A stretch of 64,000 nucleotides of DNA from contig JBBPEB010000011.1 of assembly GCA_039096225.1 (NCBI GenBank), positions 62,001-126,000 on the forward strand. Reading direction: 5' to 3'. Numbering within the stretch: position 1 is the first letter of the stretch; each line of letters opens with the position of its first letter. Below the pieces are notes generated by a model, which searched no databases, was not told where the DNA came from, and saw nothing but the letters and a program-made list of their open reading frames with translations. This document shows positions 5,628 to 50,578 of the stretch, piece after piece. This DNA is from Blastocystis sp. Blastoise (taxonomy: Eukaryota; Protista; Bigyra: Opalinata). The position numbers and the translations under genes were made by a program.

Positions 5628-6333
5628 TTAACATTTAGCTCTAGCTTTTTCCATTAATTCAAGAGGTTTTGTGATATTCTTTAAATTAGTATCTACTACT
5701 TCACCATTACAAACCATTTCATCTAAAATAAAATGAGCACGCTCAAGATTAAACATAATCTATATATTATTATGTTTATTGTTTTTTATTATATATATAT
5801 ACATCTAATTCACACTATATATTATCATTTTGGAATATTATTTTTGTATTGTTGGAAATACATATAGAAATATAATTAAATAATAAATAAATAATAAATA
5901 AATATAATTAAAATAATAAATAAATAAATAATAAAAACATACAACATTACCAAAGAATTTATCTAATGTTTCAACATAACAATGAATAAATTCAAGAATA
6001 CCAATTTCATTCTATAAAAATAATAAATAAAAAAAAATAAATAATAATAATTTATACTACAAAAAGAATAATAATTTAATAATAAAAAAAAAAACAATAT
6101 ACATCTTCTCCTTCAAGATCTACACCAACAATAAAGAAAATAGAAGCATAACGTCTGAAAATAATCTTATATTTATCATATTCAATGAAATTACATTGAT
6201 TATCCTTTACACCAAGACATTTACGAACACATTCACCTTCAAGTTGTACTCTTTGATCAATGTTTAAGAACTCGTAATAAACAGACATACGAGTCTGACC
6301 TAATTTATTAACAATCAAGAAAAATTGGATCAT
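5628..6333 (-). CDS. AP4S1: AP-4 adaptor complex sigma subunit, copy A (4 exons)
   Basis: MIQFFLIVNKLGQTRMSVYYE..IIFRRYASIFFIVGVD / NEIGILEFIHCYVETLDKFFGNV / CELD / IMFNLERAHFILDEMVCNG. This is the clathrin adaptor small-chain signature, closest to sigma-4. Confidence 0.88.
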
Positions 6334-6638: not shown

Positions 6639-7298
6639 ATGATCCAATTTTTCTTGATTGTTAATAAATTAGGTCAGACTCGTATGTCTGTTTATTACGA
6701 GTTCCTCAATATTGATCAAAGAGTACAACTTGAAGGTGAATGTGTTCGTAAATGTCTTGGTGTAAAGGATAATCAATGTAATTTCATTGAATATGATAAA
6801 TATAAGATTATTTTCAGACGTTATGCTTCTATTTTCTTTATTGTTGGTGTAGATCTTGAAGGAGAAGATGTATATTGTTTTTATTATTAAATTATTATTC
6901 TTTTTGTAGTATAAATTATTATTATTTATTTTTTTTATTTATTATTTTTATAGAATGAAATTGGTATTCTTGAATTTATTCATTGTTATGTTGAAACATT
7001 AGATAAATTCTTTGGTAATGTTGTATGTTTTTATTATTTATTTATTTATTATTTATTTATATATGTATTTCCAACAATACAAAAATAATATTCCAAAATG
7101 ATAATATATAGTGTGAATTAGATGTATATATATATAATAAAAAACAATAAACATAATAATATATAGATTATGTTTAATCTTGAGCGTGCTCATTTTATTT
7201 TAGATGAAATGGTTTGTAATGGTGAAGTAGTAGATACTAATTTAAAGAATATCACAAAACCTCTTGAATTAATGGAAAAAGCTAGAGCTAAATGTTAA
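6639..7298 (+). CDS. AP4S1: AP-4 adaptor complex sigma subunit, copy B (4 exons, including 12-nt micro-exon 7112-7123)
   Basis: Encodes the same protein as copy A, with the same three GT-AG introns; stop TAA at 7296-7298. Confidence 0.88.
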
Positions 7299-19582: not shown

Positions 19583-21106
19583 ATGACCTTTAATCGAGCT
19601 TCCAAGTGTATCTCATTTCTATTCCATCATCTTCTAATTAAAATATAAAATAATATTTGACAAACAATCATATATTTGTTTTGTTTTCTTCATTTTTTAA
19701 TTATTTTGTTTTGTAGCTGTTGATACGATGAATGCTCTTAGAAAAATATTCGATATGACAAAGGAAGATATGTTAAAATTATCAACCTACTGTCAACAAG
19801 AAATTAAAAGTGGTTTAAAGAATGAAGTTTCTGATTTAAAGATGCTACCTTCTTTTGTTACAAATCTTGCTAAAGGTATATATAAAATAAATAATATTTA
19901 AAAAAAGAAAATTTTTTCTTCATTTAAGTGTAAATAATCTATTATATTTTATTACTTTATATAGGAACTGAAGTAGGTTATGCTTTAGCTTTAGATTTAG
20001 GTGGTACTAATTGTCGTGTTGTTAATTTCCATTTCTTAGGTAATGGTGTAGTTGAACCTGTTAAAGAAGTAAAAAAGACTATTCCTAAAGAATATATGTA
20101 TGGAACTGCTGATGAATTATATGGATTTTTAGCTCAAGCTATTAAAGAAGCTGATCCAGCTCCTAAGAGTAAACTTGGTTTTACTTTTTCATTTCCTTCT
20201 GAACAACATTCACTTAATGATTGTACTTTAGTTATTTGGACTAAAGGTTTTGCTACTGCTGGATGTGTAGGAAAAAGTCCTGTTAAACTTTTAGAAGAAC
20301 AATTAAAGAAATTAAATGTTGATGTTGAAATTGTAGCTATTTGTAATGATACTGTTGGTACTCTTATTTCTAGATCTTATTATGATCCTTTTTGTACTAT
20401 TGGTGTTATTTTAGGAACAGGTTCTAATGTAGCTTATTATGAAAAACTTGATAATATTATAAAATATGATAATAAGAATCATGATGAAAAGATGATCGTA
20501 AATATGGAATGTGGTGCTTTAGGAGATAGAGATCATTCTTGCTTACCTTTTTCAGAATTAGATGCATTTCTTGATCCTACTACACCTAATGTAGGTAAAC
20601 AAACTACAGAAAAGATGATGAGTGGCTTATATTTAGGTGAAATCACTCGTTTATGGATTATGGAAATGTGGCAAAAGAAAGAAATCTTTGTGGATCAAGA
20701 TTTATCAAAATTAATTTTTTCGAAACCTCATACTTTTGATACTCCTATTTTATCAGAAATATTACGTGATGTATCTGTTGATTTAGAACGTATTAATTAT
20801 ATACTTAAAGAACAAGGTATTGTCAATACTACTTATGAAGATAGAAGAAAAATATATGAAATTGTTGATTTAGTCATGACTCGATCTGCTCGTGTTCTTG
20901 CTTCTATTTTACATGCTATTTATCAACAAACTAATGATTTTGATACTCGTGGAACTGTTGGTGTTGATGGAAGTGTTTATAAACATGTTCCTGGATATCA
21001 AAATAAACTTCAACATGCTTTACAAATGTTAGGTCTTTCTCCTGTTGTAGGTCTTGCTGAAGATGGATCCGGTATTGGTGCTGCTCTTATTGCTTATACT
21101 GCTTAA
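19583..21106 (+). CDS. HK: Hexokinase (3 exons)
   Basis: LKMLPSFV, ALDLGGTNCRV, LGFTFSFP, WTKGF, NDTVGT, GVILGTGSN, NMECG, EKMMSGLYLGE, DGSVY, EDGSGIGAA. The start at 19583 is inferred from an in-frame upstream exon; 19728 is the alternative. Confidence 0.95.
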
Positions 21107-30051: not shown

Positions 30052-30184
30052 ACTAATTAATCAATATAAAATAACAATATTATCCAGGTAATCAATATAT
30101 TAAATAGAGTATTTCATTCAGCATGAAAATCAAAATAAAACTTGAACACTTTTCTTTATATATAGGGAGATATGTACTTTGTAG

Positions 30185-30472
30185 TAGGGTTCGCCATAGG
30201 TTACCCAGGGTAGGGACTCTACCCCAGAAATTTTTTTGTCCTACGCCTTGAACCGCCAGAAGTTTTCTTAAAACTGGCTCTTTTGGGAATTCTGTATCCC
30301 AGCAGAGTCTTCGTCAGCGTTCGCCATAGGTTACCCAGGGTAGGGACTCTACCCCAGACATTTTTGTCCTACGCCTTGAACCGCCAGAAGTACTCTTAAA
30401 ACTGGCTCTTTGGGGAATTGTGTATCCCAGTAGAGTCTTCGTATTGAACCCTGGTCTTCGTGTTGAACCCTG
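30185..30472. mobile_element. Nested pair of ~140-bp hAT-type MITEs (inner copy 30315-30453)
   Basis: The outer copy starts TAGGGTTCGCCATAG. The inner copy CAGCGTTCGCC...GAACCCTG is flanked by GTCTTCGT on both sides (30307-30314 and 30454-30461). The outer end GTTGAACCCTG then resumes. A degenerate half copy follows at about 30480-30545. Confidence 0.9.
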
Positions 30473-31394
30473 CCAAAAAAATCTCTTCAAAACTGAATCT
30501 TTTGAGACAAGTATATCCCAAGAGAGTCTTTATGGCAAACATTTCACGAAAATTAACCAATTTTTTATTTTAAATTTTGATTGTTTTTTCTTTATAATAT
30601 CTATTTAAAACACTTTACACAGAATGTATTGTCATGAAAAATACGTTGACCTCAATATAGAAATCAAAAATAATCATTTCACTCAAAATTGAAATAATAG
30701 GATGATATGTAAACGATAAAAAAATAGTATCGATGCGTTTACTGGTCCATGGAAAAGACTAATGAGTAGCTTCAGAATGAATTCATTGCTTCTCCTTTGA
30801 AATCAACATATTTTTCTTTTCTATGTCTTGATATTTCATTAGTATGTGATTTCTATGGTGGAATCGATTAATTCTAGTATCATTCGTTATGATAGCTTGG
30901 AGAACCTTTCTTATTCTCTTGATTTTTAAATGAATTCTATCATGATTTCATATAAAAACAAATTCTTGTGTCTATACTATTTAAGATACAAATGATATAC
31001 TATACAAGATATTGTATAATAGTTCTTAATTCATCTATAGTGAATGCTAAACATAGTATTCCAAACAAAAAAAATTCTATCTATTTTTGGTCTTTACATA
31101 TAAAGTATTCTAAATACACTCACTATTAAGAAAATGAGTTTTTTTTTATTTATTCATTTTTAACTATTAAGAATATGTAGTGTTCAAAATATTTTTTTAT
31201 ATAACGAATAGAATGATATATGTATATATTCTTTTAGAATCTAACAACACAAGTTATTCTTATCATATATTCATATGAAAACAAAGGATAGAATTAACAT
31301 AAGATATATATAAATGATCTATGACTAAATAAATAAATAAAAAAACAATAAACAGAATTAAAAAATAATACATAATAAAAAGAAATCATAGTAT

Positions 31395-33577: not shown

Positions 33578-34431
33578 TTACTTCTTACGAATAGGAAAAG
33601 CTCTTTCAAAAATAGGTAAAGTTAAGTCCGAATAAGCTTTTAATTTTGTTTTCTATATATGTATAATAAATTTATTTTATAATAAATAAAACATAATATT
33701 AAATAAAAAATAATATTAAATAAAACATAATATTAAATAAAAAATAATATTAAATAAAATATAATATTAAATAAAAAATAATATTAAATAAAATATAATA
33801 TTATATAAAATATGAAAAATAAAATATAAATATATAAAATATTAAAAAATAAGATATTAAAAAATAAAAAAATATTAAATAAAAAATTATTATATAAACT
33901 AAATAAACAATAAAATACATTGTCTTCAGAGAAATCATTAGAAACTGTAACAATTGAATCTCCTACAGCTGATACAGATGTATTATCTGCTATATCTCCT
34001 TCAACATGTGTTTTTGGAGCAATTTTACAACCTGATCCTATTGTTTTTGTATTAGGTCCAATAAAGCATCCTGCTCCAAATTCATTTGCATCTCCTATTA
34101 ACTATGTAGAAAATAAGAAAACAATAAGAAAAAATAAATTTATAATAATTATCTGAAAAAATACTTCACAACCTTCAATTCTAGTCCCAACATGTAACGA
34201 ATTAAACTTACCGATATTCATTCCTGGACATCCTTCAGGACATACGATTTTGCATTTGTCTTCAATAATCGTTCTATCACCAATAATGATAGGGCCACCA
34301 ATGGCTTTGATTTGAACTCGTGGATGAACGACAACAAATTTTCCTATTGTAATATCACCTTCAAGGATACAATCTCTAGAGATCTTGCTTAAAATAGGAA
34401 TAGCATAAACTTTCTTTTCCTTGGTTGCCAT
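33578..34431 (-). CDS. DCTN6: Dynactin subunit 6 (p27), left-handed beta-helix
   Basis: ILEGDITIGKFVVVHPRVQIKAIGGPIIIGDRTIIED..MNIGKFN..IGDANEF; 3 exons. Confidence 0.85.
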
Positions 34432-34623: not shown

Positions 34624-36691
34624 ATGAATAACATGAATTTGAAAGAATTTTTTGAACAATCCAATTGGAAAGATTTTGAACCAGAGCCATTGGAAGAAAT
34701 ATTTACTAATATATGTCCGATACAGTATACACGAGATTGTAAGCATATTCAATTGTGTTTATTATAAAATATATATATATTTTTTGTTAGTTTTGCTTCT
34801 TACAAGTTATTTTAAAGGAATCTTACGTGATAAAGAATTTTCAGAAAGGGCTTATCAATTAACATATCTTGTTATTAAAATAGATCCATCGAATTATTCA
34901 GCATGGTATTTAAATCAAATTTCTTCTGTTAATTTTTCTCATTGTTTATGAGTATAGGATTCATCGTCAGAAATGTATGGATAAATTAAATATTCCTTTA
35001 GAGTCTGATTTTGCTTTATGTGATTCTGTAATACAAAAAAATATAAAAAACTATCAAGCATGGTATTTTATATATAGATTATTTGACTTTTTTTAATTAT
35101 ATATAGATTATTTAGTTTTTTATTTATTTATATTATATATAGATTATTTGACTTTTTAATTTTATTATATATAGATTATTTATTTTTTTATTTATAATAT
35201 ATATAATATTTGACTTTTTAATTTTATTATATATAGATTTTTTAATTTTTTTATTTATAATATATATATAATATTTGACTTTTTTATATTATATATAAAT
35301 ATATAGGATGCATAGGAGATATATTGTGAGTCATACAAGTATTTTTGCAATATATATATATATATGATGAATTAACTATAGATAAATATGAGCAAGAATT
35401 AGAATATACAAAGAATATATTAAAAAAAGACGCTAAAAATATGCATGCTTGGCAACAACGTCAATATATTAATGAAACCTTTGACCAATGGGATGAGGAG
35501 TTAGAATACACAGCTAGTATTATATTTATTATATTTTTATATTATTATATTTTTATATTATTATATTTTTATATTATTATATTTTATTTTTATTATATTT
35601 ATTATATTATTATATTTATTATATTTATTATATTTATTATATTTATTATATTTATTATATTTATTATATTTATTATATTTATTATATTTATTATATTTAT
35701 TATATTTATTATATTTATTATATTTATTATATTTATTATATTTATTATATTTATTATATTATTATATTATTATATTTATTATATTTATTATATTTATTAT
35801 ATTATTATATTTATTATATTTATTATATTATTATATTTATTATATTTATTATATTATTATATTTATTATATTTATTATATTATTATATTAATTATATTAT
35901 TATATTAATTATATTATTATATTTATTATATTTATTATATTATTATATTTATTATATTTATTATATCATTATAATCATTATGTTTATTATAAATATATAT
36001 AAAGGTTTATTAGCTGAGGATATTCGTAATAATAGTGCATGGGTACATCGTTATAATACTATTCAACATCTTTATTCTATTCAAAAAGATGAGTCAATAT
36101 TAAAAGAAGAGATTGCTTATATAAAAATATCATTACAAATAACAATGCATAATACTTCTATATGGACATATATAAGAGGATTTATTCGTGATTATTCTAC
36201 TCCTTCTATTACATCACTTGAAAACTGGATTCTCGTTCTCTCTGTATATATATACATATACATATATATTACTATTATTTAATAAATTACATCATTATTC
36301 TATTAAAAAATATATTATTATTATTTAATATAAAATTTACATCATTACTCTATTAAAACATATATTATTATTTAATAAATTACATCATTATTCTATTAAA
36401 ACATATATATTATTATTTAATAAATTACATCATTATTCTATTAAAACATATATATTATTATATATAGAATGCCATACATGAAAATGAATATTGTTTATTA
36501 ACATGTGCTGATATATATATTAAACGTCAACAACCCGAAAGAGCTATAGAAGTATATCTCTTTATTCTATTTTTATCTCTTATATTCTATTATTCACTAT
36601 TTACTTATTATAGATGTATACACAATTACAAAATGTATGTCCATTTAGAAATCAATTATGGACTAATCTTATCAGCAACTTACAACATTAA
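34624..36691 (+). CDS. FNTA: Protein farnesyltransferase/geranylgeranyltransferase-I alpha subunit
   Basis: N-terminal WKDFEP..ICPIQY..YFKGIL..EFSERA. PFTA repeats PSNYSAWIHR, KNYQAWMHRR, AKNMHAWQQRQ, IRNNSAWVHRY and HNTSIWTYIRG. Confidence 0.9.
36273..36460. repeat. Intronic minisatellite (ATTACATCATTATTCTATTAAAA.. unit, about 4 copies)
   Basis: The unit recurs at about 36286, 36337, 36380 and 36424. Confidence 0.8.
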
Positions 36692-37753
36692 TTCAAACAC
36701 TATTCTTTATATTGTTTATTTTGTTATCTCTTCTTTTTTTGTTATTATTATTCCTTCAATTATAAATAGTTTTGTTCTCTACATATAATTATTACTTTCT
36801 CATTTCAAATTACTCTTCAAACCATTGTTTTTTTTTCATAAAAAAAACAGAATATAATCGTGATATTCTTTTATTATTATCAATAATCATTTTAAAATGT
36901 AAATAATTAATTTTCATGTATTCTCAAACTCAGAAGTCTCTCACCAAGAGTTCTCCAATTTTATATTATTAAATATCCAAAAAAAAAAATCATCTATACT
37001 GCACATATTAATTCTATGCTTCATTCGTCATAACAATCCTTTTATTTTTTTTTTAAACATTATCTTTGATTAATGAATCAAGAAAACATAAAGTCATATT
37101 TCATAAATAATTCACATTTATACTAATTCATAATGTCATTTATTGACTCATAAGTATACTAAACAATTTATAAACTATTTTCAAGACCATAATTCTTCTT
37201 TTTTTATAATCTCCCTTTTCAACTCTTCCTATTTATTTCTATTCTCAACTTAGATATTAGTTCTGTATTCATTAGTCAATCATTTGCCAACAATATATAC
37301 CCATAATTATAATAATAATAATAAACGGATCAACAAATTGTTTTTAAAAACTAAACCATGTAATGGTCTAATGTAATCACTACAAGTTTTTTCTAATTTA
37401 TATATTCTCATCTATTGTTTTAATTAGAATTGAGAAATTAATTAATTTTTATTATCTACTAAATACTTATTTTAAAAAAAAATATATAAAACATTTTCTA
37501 TCTTCATTTCTATCATTTTCCAATCATTTTTTATAACAAAAAATATTATGTATAATGACCCTATACTATTTATTTTCTATGCTTATATAAAGGCACATAT
37601 ATATGTTCAGAATTTAAGTTTTTTTAAATGCTTTCAGAAACGAGCGGCGAATCTATAAAAAACTACAACTCCACATTCCTTTCACATTCATCATTTTCTC
37701 ATTTTTATTTTTTCAAAACATTTTTCGTATTTAGTTATTAATACATTACAATT

Positions 37754-37849
37754 ATGGACGCCGTTTGTGAAGCTGCTTGTGATGGTGCTGGTGAAGTCGT
37801 CTGCGAAGTTTTATCTGTAGCCCTTCTTCCTTGTTGCTCAATCTTCTAA
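37754..37849 (+). CDS. 31-aa Cys-rich micropeptide ending in CC-SIF (CaaX)
   Basis: MDAVCEAACDGAGEVVCEVLSVALLPCCSIF*. It is a GC-rich island in about 2 kb of AT-rich DNA, uses C-ending codons (GAC, GCC, GTC, TGC, ATC, TTC), and has the same C-terminal tetrapeptide as the next gene. It falls below the ORF-track cutoff. Confidence 0.7.
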   Translation: MDAVCEAACDGAGEVVCEVLSVALLPCCSIF

Positions 37850-38910
37850 ATGCGCACGTATTCTGAATATATACTTTCTTTTATTGATGCTAATCAGTGA
37901 TAAACATAATATTAATAATAAATGCATTTCATTTTTCCAATTTAGGGGTTATCATAAAGCCAATAAATGACATTTTTGTTTTGTTCTTTTTCCATATTTA
38001 TTCATATATACATCACTATAATATTCAATTTCGCCGTTCATTATTTTATTTCGTTCTATTACTCTCCAATCTGAATTTTACTGAACGATTTTATTCTATT
38101 GAACAAAATAATGTTTATTTTTTTCATAAGATAACTTGATTACCTTTTAAAAACGTTCCATTATTCTTGGAGACATGTTTGATATCAACTTTGATATACT
38201 GAATAGATCATTAGGAGATTTCGTCACATTTACTGAATAATCACTATTGCTACTATTTATTATATATTATTAATCTCTTATAGTTTTTATATCGTTTCTG
38301 ACATATGAAATACACTTTAATCAGGTTTTTTAGAAATTGATGAACATATTAGAAGTTTGGCTATAATAATGAAACAATATATTAAAATTGATAATTTATC
38401 ATTATCTTTATTTAAATTTTATTTTTTTTTGATAATTAATATAATTTTATAAGTAAAATTGTGAAAAAAAAAATGAAAAATAATAAAATTTTTTTTTTGT
38501 TTGTTCTACCGTTAAATGAGTTAACAATTATATAATTAATAATTGTTCATAGATTGTATATGTGTTTTCAACATGATTCAGGCATTTATTAGGTCATTCT
38601 CACACATACACTTTCTATGAAACTGTTCTTCCTAAATTCAATTTGTTAAAATATATAATAGATTAATGTTGAAATAATATTGTCATATTACTAAATCTAA
38701 CTGACTGTCCAAACAATAATAAAAAGTGCAAAAACAAAATCAATAGCAATAAAAATACTAAAGACAAATAACTGTTTTTAGTACACTTTTTCTAAATCGA
38801 ATATATTTATGAAGTATCTTATTCTTGTTTTCAAACTTCTATCATTTATTTTTTGATTTCAATCAATTAATTCTACTTTTCTCTTTGTTTATAAATACTA
38901 AGTCTTCATA

Positions 38911-39501
38911 ATGCAACAAAATCTCTCATCCAATGTCAATAACAATCCTGCTCCTCTTAATAATATAAATGCAGATCAAACTCCTATCACAAATGCAAAT
39001 ACTGATGCTACACCTGTTGCCAATATCAATACTAGTGCTGCTCCTGTTAATTGCGATAATATTAATCCTAATCCTATAAATGATGTCAATAATAATAATC
39101 CTAATCCTGTAAATGGTGTAAATAACAATCCTCCTAATCCTGCCAATTATGTAAATAATGGTTCTTATCCTGTAACTTATGCTAATAATGGTACAGCTCC
39201 TCTCACATATGCTTATAATGGTTCTTATCCTGTAACTTATGCAAATAATGGTTCTTATCCTGTAACTTATACTAATAATGGTTCTTACTATGTCGCCTAT
39301 CCTAATAATGGATCTTATCCTGTAACTTATGTAAATAATGGTTCTCTGCCAGTCATTTATACAGTCAATGACTCTCAACATTCTAAGAGTAGTTCTGGTG
39401 AATGCTGTCCTGGTGGATGCTGTGCAACATGTTGTGCTGACAGCTGTTGTAGTGAATGTTTATGTAATGTTTGTTGTGGAAACGTCTGTAGTATTTTTTA
39501 A
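38911..39501 (+). CDS. Asn/Pro/Tyr-rich repeat protein with CYSTM-like Cys-rich tail ending in CSIF (CaaX)
   Basis: Intronless 196-aa ORF with 10-aa repeats NNGSYPVTY(A/V/T) (30-bp unit, about 7 copies). Tail: ECCPGGCCATCCADSCCSECLCNVCCGNVCSIF. Confidence 0.8.
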   Translation: MQQNLSSNVNNNPAPLNNINADQTPITNANTDATPVANINTSAAPVNCDNINPNPINDVNNNNPNPVNGVNNNPPNPANYVNNGSYPVTYANNGTAPLTYAYNGSYPVTYANNGSYPVTYTNNGSYYVAYPNNGSYPVTYVNNGSLPVIYTVNDSQHSKSSSGECCPGGCCATCCADSCCSECLCNVCCGNVCSIF

Positions 39502-40199
39502 TAAAATAAATATTTTTTGTAAATGTTTCTCTATCTTTTAATTACTTTTATATAAATTTAAAAATTCATTAAATTTATATCTATCTATTTTCATTTGATA
39601 TTATTATTATTATTGTTGTTTTCTTGTCTATACTTGTTTTGTTATTTATAAACAAATAGTACATACATTTTCTTTATTAAACTTTTATTTACGATTAAAA
39701 AAAAATTTATGAAAACTTACATTAATTTGAAATGAAAAAAAAGGATTTCTCACGAATATTTATAGAGAAACAGTCATATTTTGAAAATTTCATAGAAAAA
39801 AGTTTTCTTTCTTTTTATGTTTATCAGATATTACTAGCTTTGCAGAAATTATCAAACATTTTATTTTACATGAAATACTACTTAATAAGCCTAGATTTTA
39901 TTTTATTCATTCTATTTTGTGTTTTTTGACATATATAATCTACAGAATTGGATAATTTCGCTACTTTTAAGGATGATCCATTGAATCATAACACAAAACA
40001 CCTCATATATCATTTTGATCCTTTTAAACAACTTAATATTACATACATTATATATTTATAAAAAAAATTAATTCATTAAGAAAACAACAACAATAGCAAG
40101 TTAACACAATCACACAATATAATATACAATAATAAATAAAAAGAAATTATTGAATAATCACATTAAATATCAAAGAAAACTAAATTGTGCTATTTAACA

Positions 40200-50080: not shown

Positions 50081-50372
50081 CAGTGTTTGTCACGAAGACT
50101 CTCTTAGGGTACAAACTTCCTCAAGAGAACTATTTTTTAGGTATTCTTAGGCTCTCGAAGCGTATAGTGAAATCACGTCTAGGGTAGGCTCCTTGTGCAT
50201 TAGGTAGTGTATGGCGCAGGGTTCGCCACACTGTATTTTCAGTAAGGTCTGTACTCCAAGAGAGTTTTTATCTACGCCTTTCGCGCCTAAAGATACCCAT
50301 AAAACTGGTTCTTTCAGTAAGGTCTGTACTCCAAGAGAGTCTTCGTGGCGAACCCTAGTATGGAGAACCTTG
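50081..50372. mobile_element. Second nested pair of hAT-type MITEs (inner copy 50217-50357)
   Basis: The outer copy starts CAGTGTTTGTCACGAAGACTCT. The inner copy CAGGGTTCGCCAC...GTGGCGAACCCTA is flanked by GTATGGCG and GTATGGAG (7/8 TSD). The outer end AACCTTG follows. Confidence 0.82.
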
Positions 50373-50578
50373 AAAAATAATAATTCCACAATAAAAAAAT
50401 ATTTGTTTCATTTTTTAATTTAAAAGGGAGAATTCTAGAAATAATGATGATTCTAAGAAAAGAGTCGTTGTAAAAAGAACTTCGTCAAAGAATTCGAGAG
50501 AACAACGAAGTATTCTAATAATACGACAAGATTCTTTTCATTTCTTTATACTTGACTATTAATATAATAAACTAGATA

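Follow-up and report, generated by a model that had tools for sequence, protein, structure and literature searches.

We analysed a stretch of 64,000 nucleotides from Blastocystis sp. Blastoise (assembly GCA_039096225.1, contig JBBPEB010000011.1, positions 62,001 to 126,000 of the forward strand), in the following called the window. Within it the gene for the alpha subunit of a CaaX prenyltransferase (FNTA) is followed by two small open reading frames (ORFs). An earlier note on this DNA had taken the three as co-oriented neighbours and considered them a candidate lipopeptide system. All three were found at the coordinates given there on the plus strand, and both small ORFs, as claimed, end in C-S-I-F-TAA. 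The 31-codon ORF, in the following called the micro-ORF, ends in CCSIF and the 196-codon ORF in VCSIF. Both fit the form of a CaaX box, in which a Cys stands fourth from the C-terminus before the stop, with Ile at a2 and Phe at X. The window has a GC content of 23% and uses the standard genetic code and ordinary splicing. The features of the locus are the following, with positions counted in the window:

34624..36691, plus strand: multi-exon gene for an FNTA/RAM2-type CaaX prenyltransferase alpha subunit, recognised from PPTA repeats and PDB matches
37654..37662, plus strand: TATA-like element TATAAAAAA, read from the sequence, 100 nt upstream of the micro-ORF ATG
37754..37849, plus strand: micro-ORF, a stand-alone ORF of 31 codons from ATG to TAA ending in CCSIF, recognised from composition and codon score
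37976..37985, plus strand: TTGTTTTGTT, 127 nt downstream of the micro-ORF stop, candidate motif associated with 3' ends or polyadenylation
38911..39501, plus strand: intronless 196-codon ORF with an Asn/Pro-rich N-terminal part, tandem repeats and a Cys-string tail, from ORF and translation
39056..39345, plus strand: tandem repeats with units of 33 nt (3.2 copies) and 30 nt (6.6 copies), from Tandem Repeats Finder and a repeat search
39395..39498, plus strand: coding part of the Cys-string tail, mostly CC pairs with polar spacers, ending in CSIF, read from the translation
39634..39643, plus strand: TTGTTTTGTT, 133 nt downstream of the stop codon of the 196-codon gene

Judged from its composition and codon usage, the micro-ORF is likely to be a translated gene, and it may be unannotated. 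Its GC content amounts to 0.48 compared to about 20% in the flanks, and only 0.5% of the 93-nt windows within the 64 kb are equally GC-rich. The GC island coincides with the ORF: it begins at the ATG and stops at the stop codon. Along the codon the GC content falls from the first to the third position (0.65/0.48/0.32). The third-position value compares to 0.35 in EF1A and to 0.08–0.18 in ordinary genes of this genome, and the codons used (GCT/GCC, GGT, GTC/GTT, CTT, TTC, ATC) are those favoured in EF1A and actin. From EF1A and two actins we built a table to score codon usage. With 1.11 bits per codon the micro-ORF ranked at the top of the 202 ATG-ORFs of 25–45 codons in the window, the second-best small ORF reaching 0.58 and being an exon fragment. 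Only its own frame scored positive while the other five were negative, and the positive score was sharply bounded by the ATG and the stop. No other ORF of coding quality lies between FNTA and the 196-codon gene. Third positions are pyrimidines in 24 of the 31 codons (P = 0.003 with respect to the local base composition).

Since the Rac gene of this genome carries its CCSIF end on a last exon of 17 codons, it matters whether the micro-ORF is itself a downstream or terminal exon. This was ruled out by an in-frame TAA at 37739-37741, from which no AG follows up to the ATG. The in-frame ORF upstream (37628-37741) was rejected as an N-terminal extension due to its negative codon score. A non-coding RNA was likewise rejected: Rfam provided no match for the micro-ORF, and its RNA folding was weaker than that of shuffled sequences (z = +1.06). 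The 301 bases around the micro-ORF occur once in the genome, i.e. in the assembly of 33.3 Mb in 34 contigs to which all genome-wide counts and searches refer, such that a repeat or transposon fragment was rejected as well.

Both small ORFs are followed by TTGTTTTGTT. Five copies of this decamer are present in the window (19676, 21527, 33399 on the minus strand, 37976 and 39634) compared to 0.27 expected, all of them on the sense strand downstream of genes, and the motif was also found at the loci L025 and L097. Of 23 defined gene ends, 7 are followed by its 8-nt core TGTTTTGT within 400 nt in sense orientation and none in antisense orientation; EF1A (+55) and a 122-codon CCSIF gene described below (+76) are among the seven. 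Overall TTGTTTTGTT/TGTTTTGT is enriched about 20-fold and is located on the sense strand at 50–420 nt past stop codons. It looks like a one-T-longer variant of TGTTTGTT, the mRNA 3'-end element of human Blastocystis subtypes, which was reported not to be enriched in tortoise isolates (PMC10690189). On the upstream side, TATAAAAAA lies in a stretch of about 30% GC and provides a weak candidate for the core promoter of the micro-ORF, weak because TATA-like strings are common in an AT-rich genome.

A number of observations weigh against a translated micro-ORF. It is short, and a tandem period of 12 nt at 37765-37796 covers about a third of it; a repeat unit with a multiple of three bases holds a frame open without selection. 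The pyrimidine bias at third positions is only moderate if compared to the usage of ordinary genes (P = 0.02–0.03). No paralogue was found in the genome, and the exact sequence is absent from a collection of 15 billion proteins and from the ESM Atlas. Furthermore, islands of at least 45% GC over 93 nt occur outside obvious exons at 30161-30477 and 50129-50375, such that GC-richness alone is no proof of coding in this genome. One explanation of these points is that the micro-ORF is not translated: the GC-rich island would be a non-coding element, either a regulatory 12-nt repeat or a transcribed proto-gene, its CCSIF end would be due to chance, and only the 196-codon gene would encode a real CaaX protein. 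The lack of homologues and, apparently, of an annotation, the small number of codons with only modest results of the synonymous-site tests, and the GC-rich islands in non-genic elements of the window are all in agreement with this explanation. However, the 12-nt repeat spans only a third of the ORF, while composition and codon score are bounded by ATG and stop in one frame only. The ORF moreover ends in exactly the five residues of Rac, where a random ORF would end in CSIF with a frequency of about 1e-5 per ORF, and TTGTTTTGTT follows on the sense strand at +127. The micro-ORF sits 1.06 kb from each neighbouring gene; without it the spacer would measure 2.2 kb compared to a median of about 0.7 kb in tortoise isolates (~0.65–0.72 kb, PMC10690189). 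We thus regard an untranslated element as rather unlikely.

A second alternative is a single transcript that contains both small ORFs. Either the micro-ORF would then be an upstream ORF, within a leader that is long or spliced, or one locus would be processed alternatively. Both ORFs lie on the same strand at a distance of 1.06 kb and end in CSIF. Candidate splice sites are found as well: a GTATTC follows the micro-ORF stop at 12 nt, and the second ATG is preceded at 8 nt by a pyrimidine-rich AG. Nonetheless, TTGTTTTGTT is positioned between the ORFs, with a spacing to the micro-ORF stop much like that found past the stop of the downstream gene, and the codon optimisation of the micro-ORF exceeds that of the downstream ORF, which would be unusual for a regulatory upstream ORF. 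A shared transcript therefore appears improbable. Regarding the proposal that the micro-ORF is a real gene, the strong sequence signs of an independent and heavily used coding sequence stand, while neither a homologue nor a paralogue was obtained within the searches.

The predicted product of the micro-ORF contains five acidic residues (Asp or Glu), no Lys or Arg and five Cys. Acidic residues at positions 2, 6, 10, 14 and 18 and Cys at positions 5, 9 and 17 follow a four-residue register, such that both would line up as stripes along a helix. This acidic, Cys-bearing part is followed by a hydrophobic stretch and then by CCSIF. A PDB search with this product gave no match.

The 196-codon ORF reaches a codon score of 0.68 bits per codon, which is at least that of the reference exons. 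Its 33-nt and 30-nt repeats encode 11- and 10-residue units of Asn-Pro and NNGSYPVTY type, and its tail holds 13 Cys in 31 residues, with a 15-nt period at 39395-39423 in the part coding for it. AlphaFold2 modelled the protein with a predicted local distance difference test score (pLDDT) of 43, which is too low for a fold search. In the model each repeat forms one short strand at a pLDDT of only about 60, and head and tail are predicted to be disordered (pLDDT below 50 in the tail). A beta-solenoid look-alike in the ESM Atlas (template modelling score 0.58) comes from an Atlas model with a pLDDT of 0.56 and is a lead only. A search with phmmer against 1.84 billion representatives returned 32 matches, all driven by unrelated tandem repeats and none carrying the Cys tail. 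Pfam assigned no family to either product. As read from the translations, the N-terminus of neither is hydrophobic.

It had been suggested that GEVVCEV in the one product loosely parallels SECLCNV in the other and that a family unites both. In BLASTP the two share only the four residues CSIF (E 0.99), and no similarity beyond these and no paralogues in the genome were found. Even the codons of the shared end differ at all four positions, being TGC TCA ATC TTC in the 31-codon and TGT AGT ATT TTT in the 196-codon ORF. Paralogy of the two was rejected as unsupported on the basis of the BLASTP alignment, and the idea of a common family found no support either.

In order to judge what a CSIF end means in this organism, we counted such ends in the whole genome. 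With a TCN serine codon, C-S-I-F-TAA occurs 28 times compared to 4 times in a composition-matched control, and with an AGY serine codon 6 times compared to 4. Of these 34 ends 7 carry a Cys directly before the box, where less than one would be expected. Part of the CSIF excess is accounted for by dispersed repeats. A genome scan for C-x-I-F ends with optimal codons gave 63 matches compared to 7 in controls and contained no further convincing micro-protein. As the matches were chiefly dispersed repeats, a larger family of such micro-ORFs was rejected. Among the dispersed families, one shares identical 15-mers reading ...CFCLIF-stop (13 sites, e.g. C3:1575309, C14:1336998 and C16:963871) and another a 15-mer reading ESLCFIF-stop (9 sites, e.g. 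C8:49016 and C19:2520). These families are probably mobile elements or multi-copy genes, and they inflate genome-wide counts of CaaX-like ends.

The box is also found on bona fide GTPases. A Rac GTPase ends in GGGCCSIF (C30:79391-79405, on the 17-codon last exon mentioned above), and its other exons match Rac1/Rac2 with E 1e-22. On the contig of the window itself a CCCSIF end is found shortly downstream of a Ras-family locus, and a thioredoxin-like protein ends in GCSIF. In addition, we found a tandem pair of small genes on another contig:

C4 ~1848557-1849783 (L097 5058-5426 and 6104-6283), minus strand: two intronless Gly/Pro/His-rich ORFs of 122 and 59 codons

The 122-codon ORF of this pair ends in DDCCSIF and its 59-codon paralogue, 0.7 kb apart, in DDCCCIF. 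Both have a GC content of 52% and are codon-optimised; they belong to no Pfam family, and their exact sequences are absent from the protein collection. CSIF genes are distributed over at least six contigs. From these gene ends, CSIF, often in the form CCSIF, is evidently the ordinary CaaX box of this organism. Sharing it thus provides no evidence that two neighbours are related. The reading of CCSIF as a combined prenylation and palmitoylation signal, by contrast, gains credibility, since the identical five residues terminate the Rac GTPase of the same genome.

Prenylation of these ends requires us to consider the enzymes encoded. Matches to the PPTA repeat (PF01239) above the cut-off lie in three exons of the FNTA gene (34844-34909, 34998-35084 and 35387-35470). 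Two exon translations match the PDB structures of the alpha subunit shared by protein farnesyltransferase (FTase) and protein geranylgeranyltransferase type I (GGTase-I) with E 4.5e-13 and 3e-11, compared to 2e-3 for the alpha subunit of Rab geranylgeranyltransferase (RabGGTase). The bit scores in the PDB for an FNTA exon were 51.8 for FNTA and 21.6 for RabGGTA. The gene thus combines PPTA repeats with a greater proximity to FTase/GGTase-I alpha than to RabGGTase alpha, as is typical of the FNTA type. The sole other PPTA locus in the genome, on contig C16, is RabGGTase alpha. For the beta subunits, a search of the genome with the Prenyltrans profile detected two loci only. The one on contig C5 (FNTB) is FTase beta with 105 bits compared to 34 bits for GGTase-I beta, and the other is RabGGTase beta. 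Within the limits of this profile and of the six-frame search, no GGTase-I beta was detected. ICMT-like matches are present in the genome as well. The loci besides FNTA are:

C5:200546-201762: FTase beta (FNTB)
C2:929195-931024: RabGGTase beta
C16:1599859-1600445: RabGGTase alpha

The FTase that the earlier note had connected with the CSIF tails is thus encoded with both its alpha and its beta subunit. As no GGTase-I beta was detected, the FTase with the alpha subunit encoded here probably farnesylates Rac, Ras-like and small CSIF proteins alike, and this Blastocystis may prenylate its Rho-family GTPases by FTase. CSIF tails on Rac and Ras-like GTPases together with FTase beta as the only detectable CaaX beta subunit suggest that tortoise-clade Blastocystis carries out all CaaX prenylation via FTase, which would bear on the substrate specificity of the enzyme in Blastocystis.

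The introns of the FNTA gene are in part extremely AT-rich, with 0% GC at 35600-35899. The intron at 35530-35975 is made up of TATTA/TATTTAT-type repeats over about 450 nt, 300 nt of which have a GC content of 0%, and ORF finders take it as a long Ile/Phe/Tyr frame joined to the exon. An ORF on the minus strand (34102-34431) with hexapeptide repeats of the left-handed beta-helix type is oriented head-to-head with FNTA, at a distance of about 190 nt from the FNTA ATG. It shows weak matches to Hexapep and to the left-handed beta-helix of eIF2B-epsilon.

The most striking part of the original proposal would be the clustering of an enzyme gene with the genes of its substrates, and this part is the least supported. 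FNTA encodes the single housekeeping alpha subunit of FTase, which must also act on CSIF proteins from other loci. These proteins are scattered over the genome, and the other pair of mini-CaaX genes lies far from prenylation genes. Within approximately 10 kb on either side of FNTB or of the best ICMT match, no Cxxx ORF of coding quality was present. Attempts to follow the neighbourhood into other genomes yielded little: the word index contained no match to an FNTA exon, and a metagenome scan at the Joint Genome Institute (JGI) with FNTA gave one distant match on a 1.4-kb contig. Contigs from other Blastocystis lineages, reached via the hexokinase gene of the window, had no other gene in common with the window. 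This hexokinase ORF (20096-21103, 336 residues) is 100% identical to the NCBI protein WA158_008314 of Blastocystis sp. Blastoise. A functional link of the CSIF ORFs to FNTA is unlikely, and their adjacency is probably a coincidence.

One form of such a link would be a dedicated lipopeptide system, in which FNTA and two abundant substrates are co-regulated and the 31-residue product is exported as an a-factor-like farnesylated signal. Its size and CaaX end fit a-factor-type precursors, the codon usage suggests high expression, and two CSIF ORFs directly downstream of FNTA are, by a rough estimate, unlikely to occur by chance. However, five Cys including a CC pair are typical of a retained palmitoylated anchor rather than of an exported pheromone, and the micro-ORF is not present in multiple copies. 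The single housekeeping FNTA is moreover required for CSIF proteins from other loci, Rac and Ras-like ones included, and nothing similar was seen near FNTB or ICMT, the other mini-CaaX pair being remote from prenylation genes. We therefore consider this system most improbable; for the suggested pheromone role in particular nothing was found in favour.

Our preferred explanation, to which we give about even chances, is that the locus contains two separate lineage-specific small genes for low-complexity, Cys-bearing cytosolic proteins with a lipidated C-terminal membrane anchor, which lie next to FNTA by coincidence. We infer transcription, translation, lipid modifications and function of both genes from their sequences. 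The Cys of CSIF would be prenylated, most likely with farnesyl, given that no CaaX prenyltransferase subunits other than FTase alpha and beta are detectable in the genome. Adjacent Cys would then be S-acylated, which concerns Cys27 in the 31-residue product and, in the 196-residue protein, as many as twelve more Cys of the tail. In this way the 31-residue product would hardly comprise more than a doubly lipid-anchored acidic helix studded with Cys. The EF1A- and actin-like codon usage suggests that it is made in large amounts. The micro-ORF makes a good candidate for a micro-protein with a lipid anchor and high expression that has escaped annotation.

Three further results count against this explanation of two lineage-specific genes with lipid anchors. 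First, two CSIF genes as the next two neighbours of FNTA would arise by chance with a probability of about 1e-5 if they were independent and of less than 1e-2 if taken as one event, given about a dozen real CSIF genes among 8,547; these are rough, post-hoc values. Second, no Rce1-like protease was found in the genome search. Third, the 196-residue protein has no paralogue in the genome, its exact sequence is not in the 15-billion-protein collection, and neither a word-based search nor a JGI metagenome scan revealed homologues.

A more far-reaching and tentative version, which we hold to be doubtful, treats the 31-residue product as an abundant, free-standing farnesylated and palmitoylated micro-protein. 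Together with the 196-residue protein and the Gly/Pro/His-rich pair it would constitute a repeat-evolving class of the tortoise clade on CC-S/C-I-F anchors, which could coat or buffer the cytosolic face of membranes and would be served by one FTase that replaces GGTase-I. Thiol, metal or redox chemistry in an anaerobe would be a possible example of such a role at the membrane face. If this holds true, the 31-residue product would be one of the smallest CaaX proteins that are not pheromones. Already the expression of the micro-ORF would show that in a eukaryote a short acidic Cys-helix on a bare lipid anchor can serve as an independent, abundant protein, and the recently published genome of this organism would gain a gene that had not been annotated. 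This genome, of strain Rus-B from a Russian tortoise, comprises 33.3 Mb with 23.1% GC, 8,547 genes and AT-rich long introns, and the pipeline used for its annotation dropped assembled transcripts below 100 bp (PMC10690189).

Elsewhere in the window two identical 42-codon ORFs were found at 5628-5756 (minus strand) and 7170-7298 (plus strand). Their inverted orientation at a distance of 1.4 kb suggests that an exon or a gene end has been duplicated in inverted form.

Small precursors of the a-factor type comprise about 30–45 codons and a CaaX box; they undergo proteolytic maturation, leave the cell through an ABC exporter, act on a receptor and usually stand in a mating-type context. The micro-ORF resembles them in its stand-alone size and its CaaX end, the two features to which this comparison is limited. 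It differs in that the host is a stramenopile and not a fungus, in the five Cys of its product including the CC pair, and in its single copy.

Anchors that combine a prenyl group with palmitoylation are known from proteins of the Cdc42-palm, paralemmin and H-Ras/RhoB type. The Cdc42-palm tail CCIF, with Phe at X, is used by both FTase and GGTase-I, after which the adjacent Cys is palmitoylated (PMC9868626), and paralemmin carries a CaaX box plus two upstream Cys (PMC2148134). As in the CCSIF end of the micro-ORF, the CaaX box of such proteins is preceded directly by at least one Cys. Unlike these anchors, the products here have no folded domain and no polybasic region; what precedes the box is a 26-residue acidic, Cys-bearing stretch in the one case and a disordered repeat protein in the other.

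In its overall build, with an Asn/Pro-rich head that is predicted to be disordered or modelled at low confidence and a terminal Cys-rich module, the 196-residue protein resembles the CYSTM/CYSPD proteins (PF12734; yeast Cpp1-3, plant PCC1 and CDT1). CYSTM proteins are small, with a non-globular, Pro-rich and variable head and the Cys-rich module at the extreme C-terminus. Their hallmark is a C-terminal hydrophobic helix that contains 5–6 Cys, with 3–4 in a row, and precedes an acidic residue (PMC2804304), and the module acts as a palmitoylated anchor and not as a transmembrane helix (PMC10840359). In contrast, the tail of the 196-residue protein is polar with CC pairs; it lacks both the hydrophobic helix with 3–4 consecutive Cys and the acidic residue at the end, and it closes with a CaaX box, which CYSTM proteins do not have. 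With 196 residues the protein also exceeds the yeast prototypes (<150 aa), while the micro-ORF product has no head and one CC pair. PF12734 gave no match at E <= 1 in either protein and none at E <= 10 anywhere in the genome. Membership in CYSTM was therefore rejected for want of both a PF12734 match and the hallmark Cys run, and the notion of a minimal CYSTM-like anchor is not supported.

Within the genome itself the Gly/Pro/His-rich pair on contig C4 offers a further comparison. It differs from the ORFs of the window in that its two members are clearly paralogous to each other, have another repeat chemistry and do not lie near a prenylation gene. Like the ORFs of the window, they are small, intronless, codon-optimised and of low complexity, and they are arranged in tandem.

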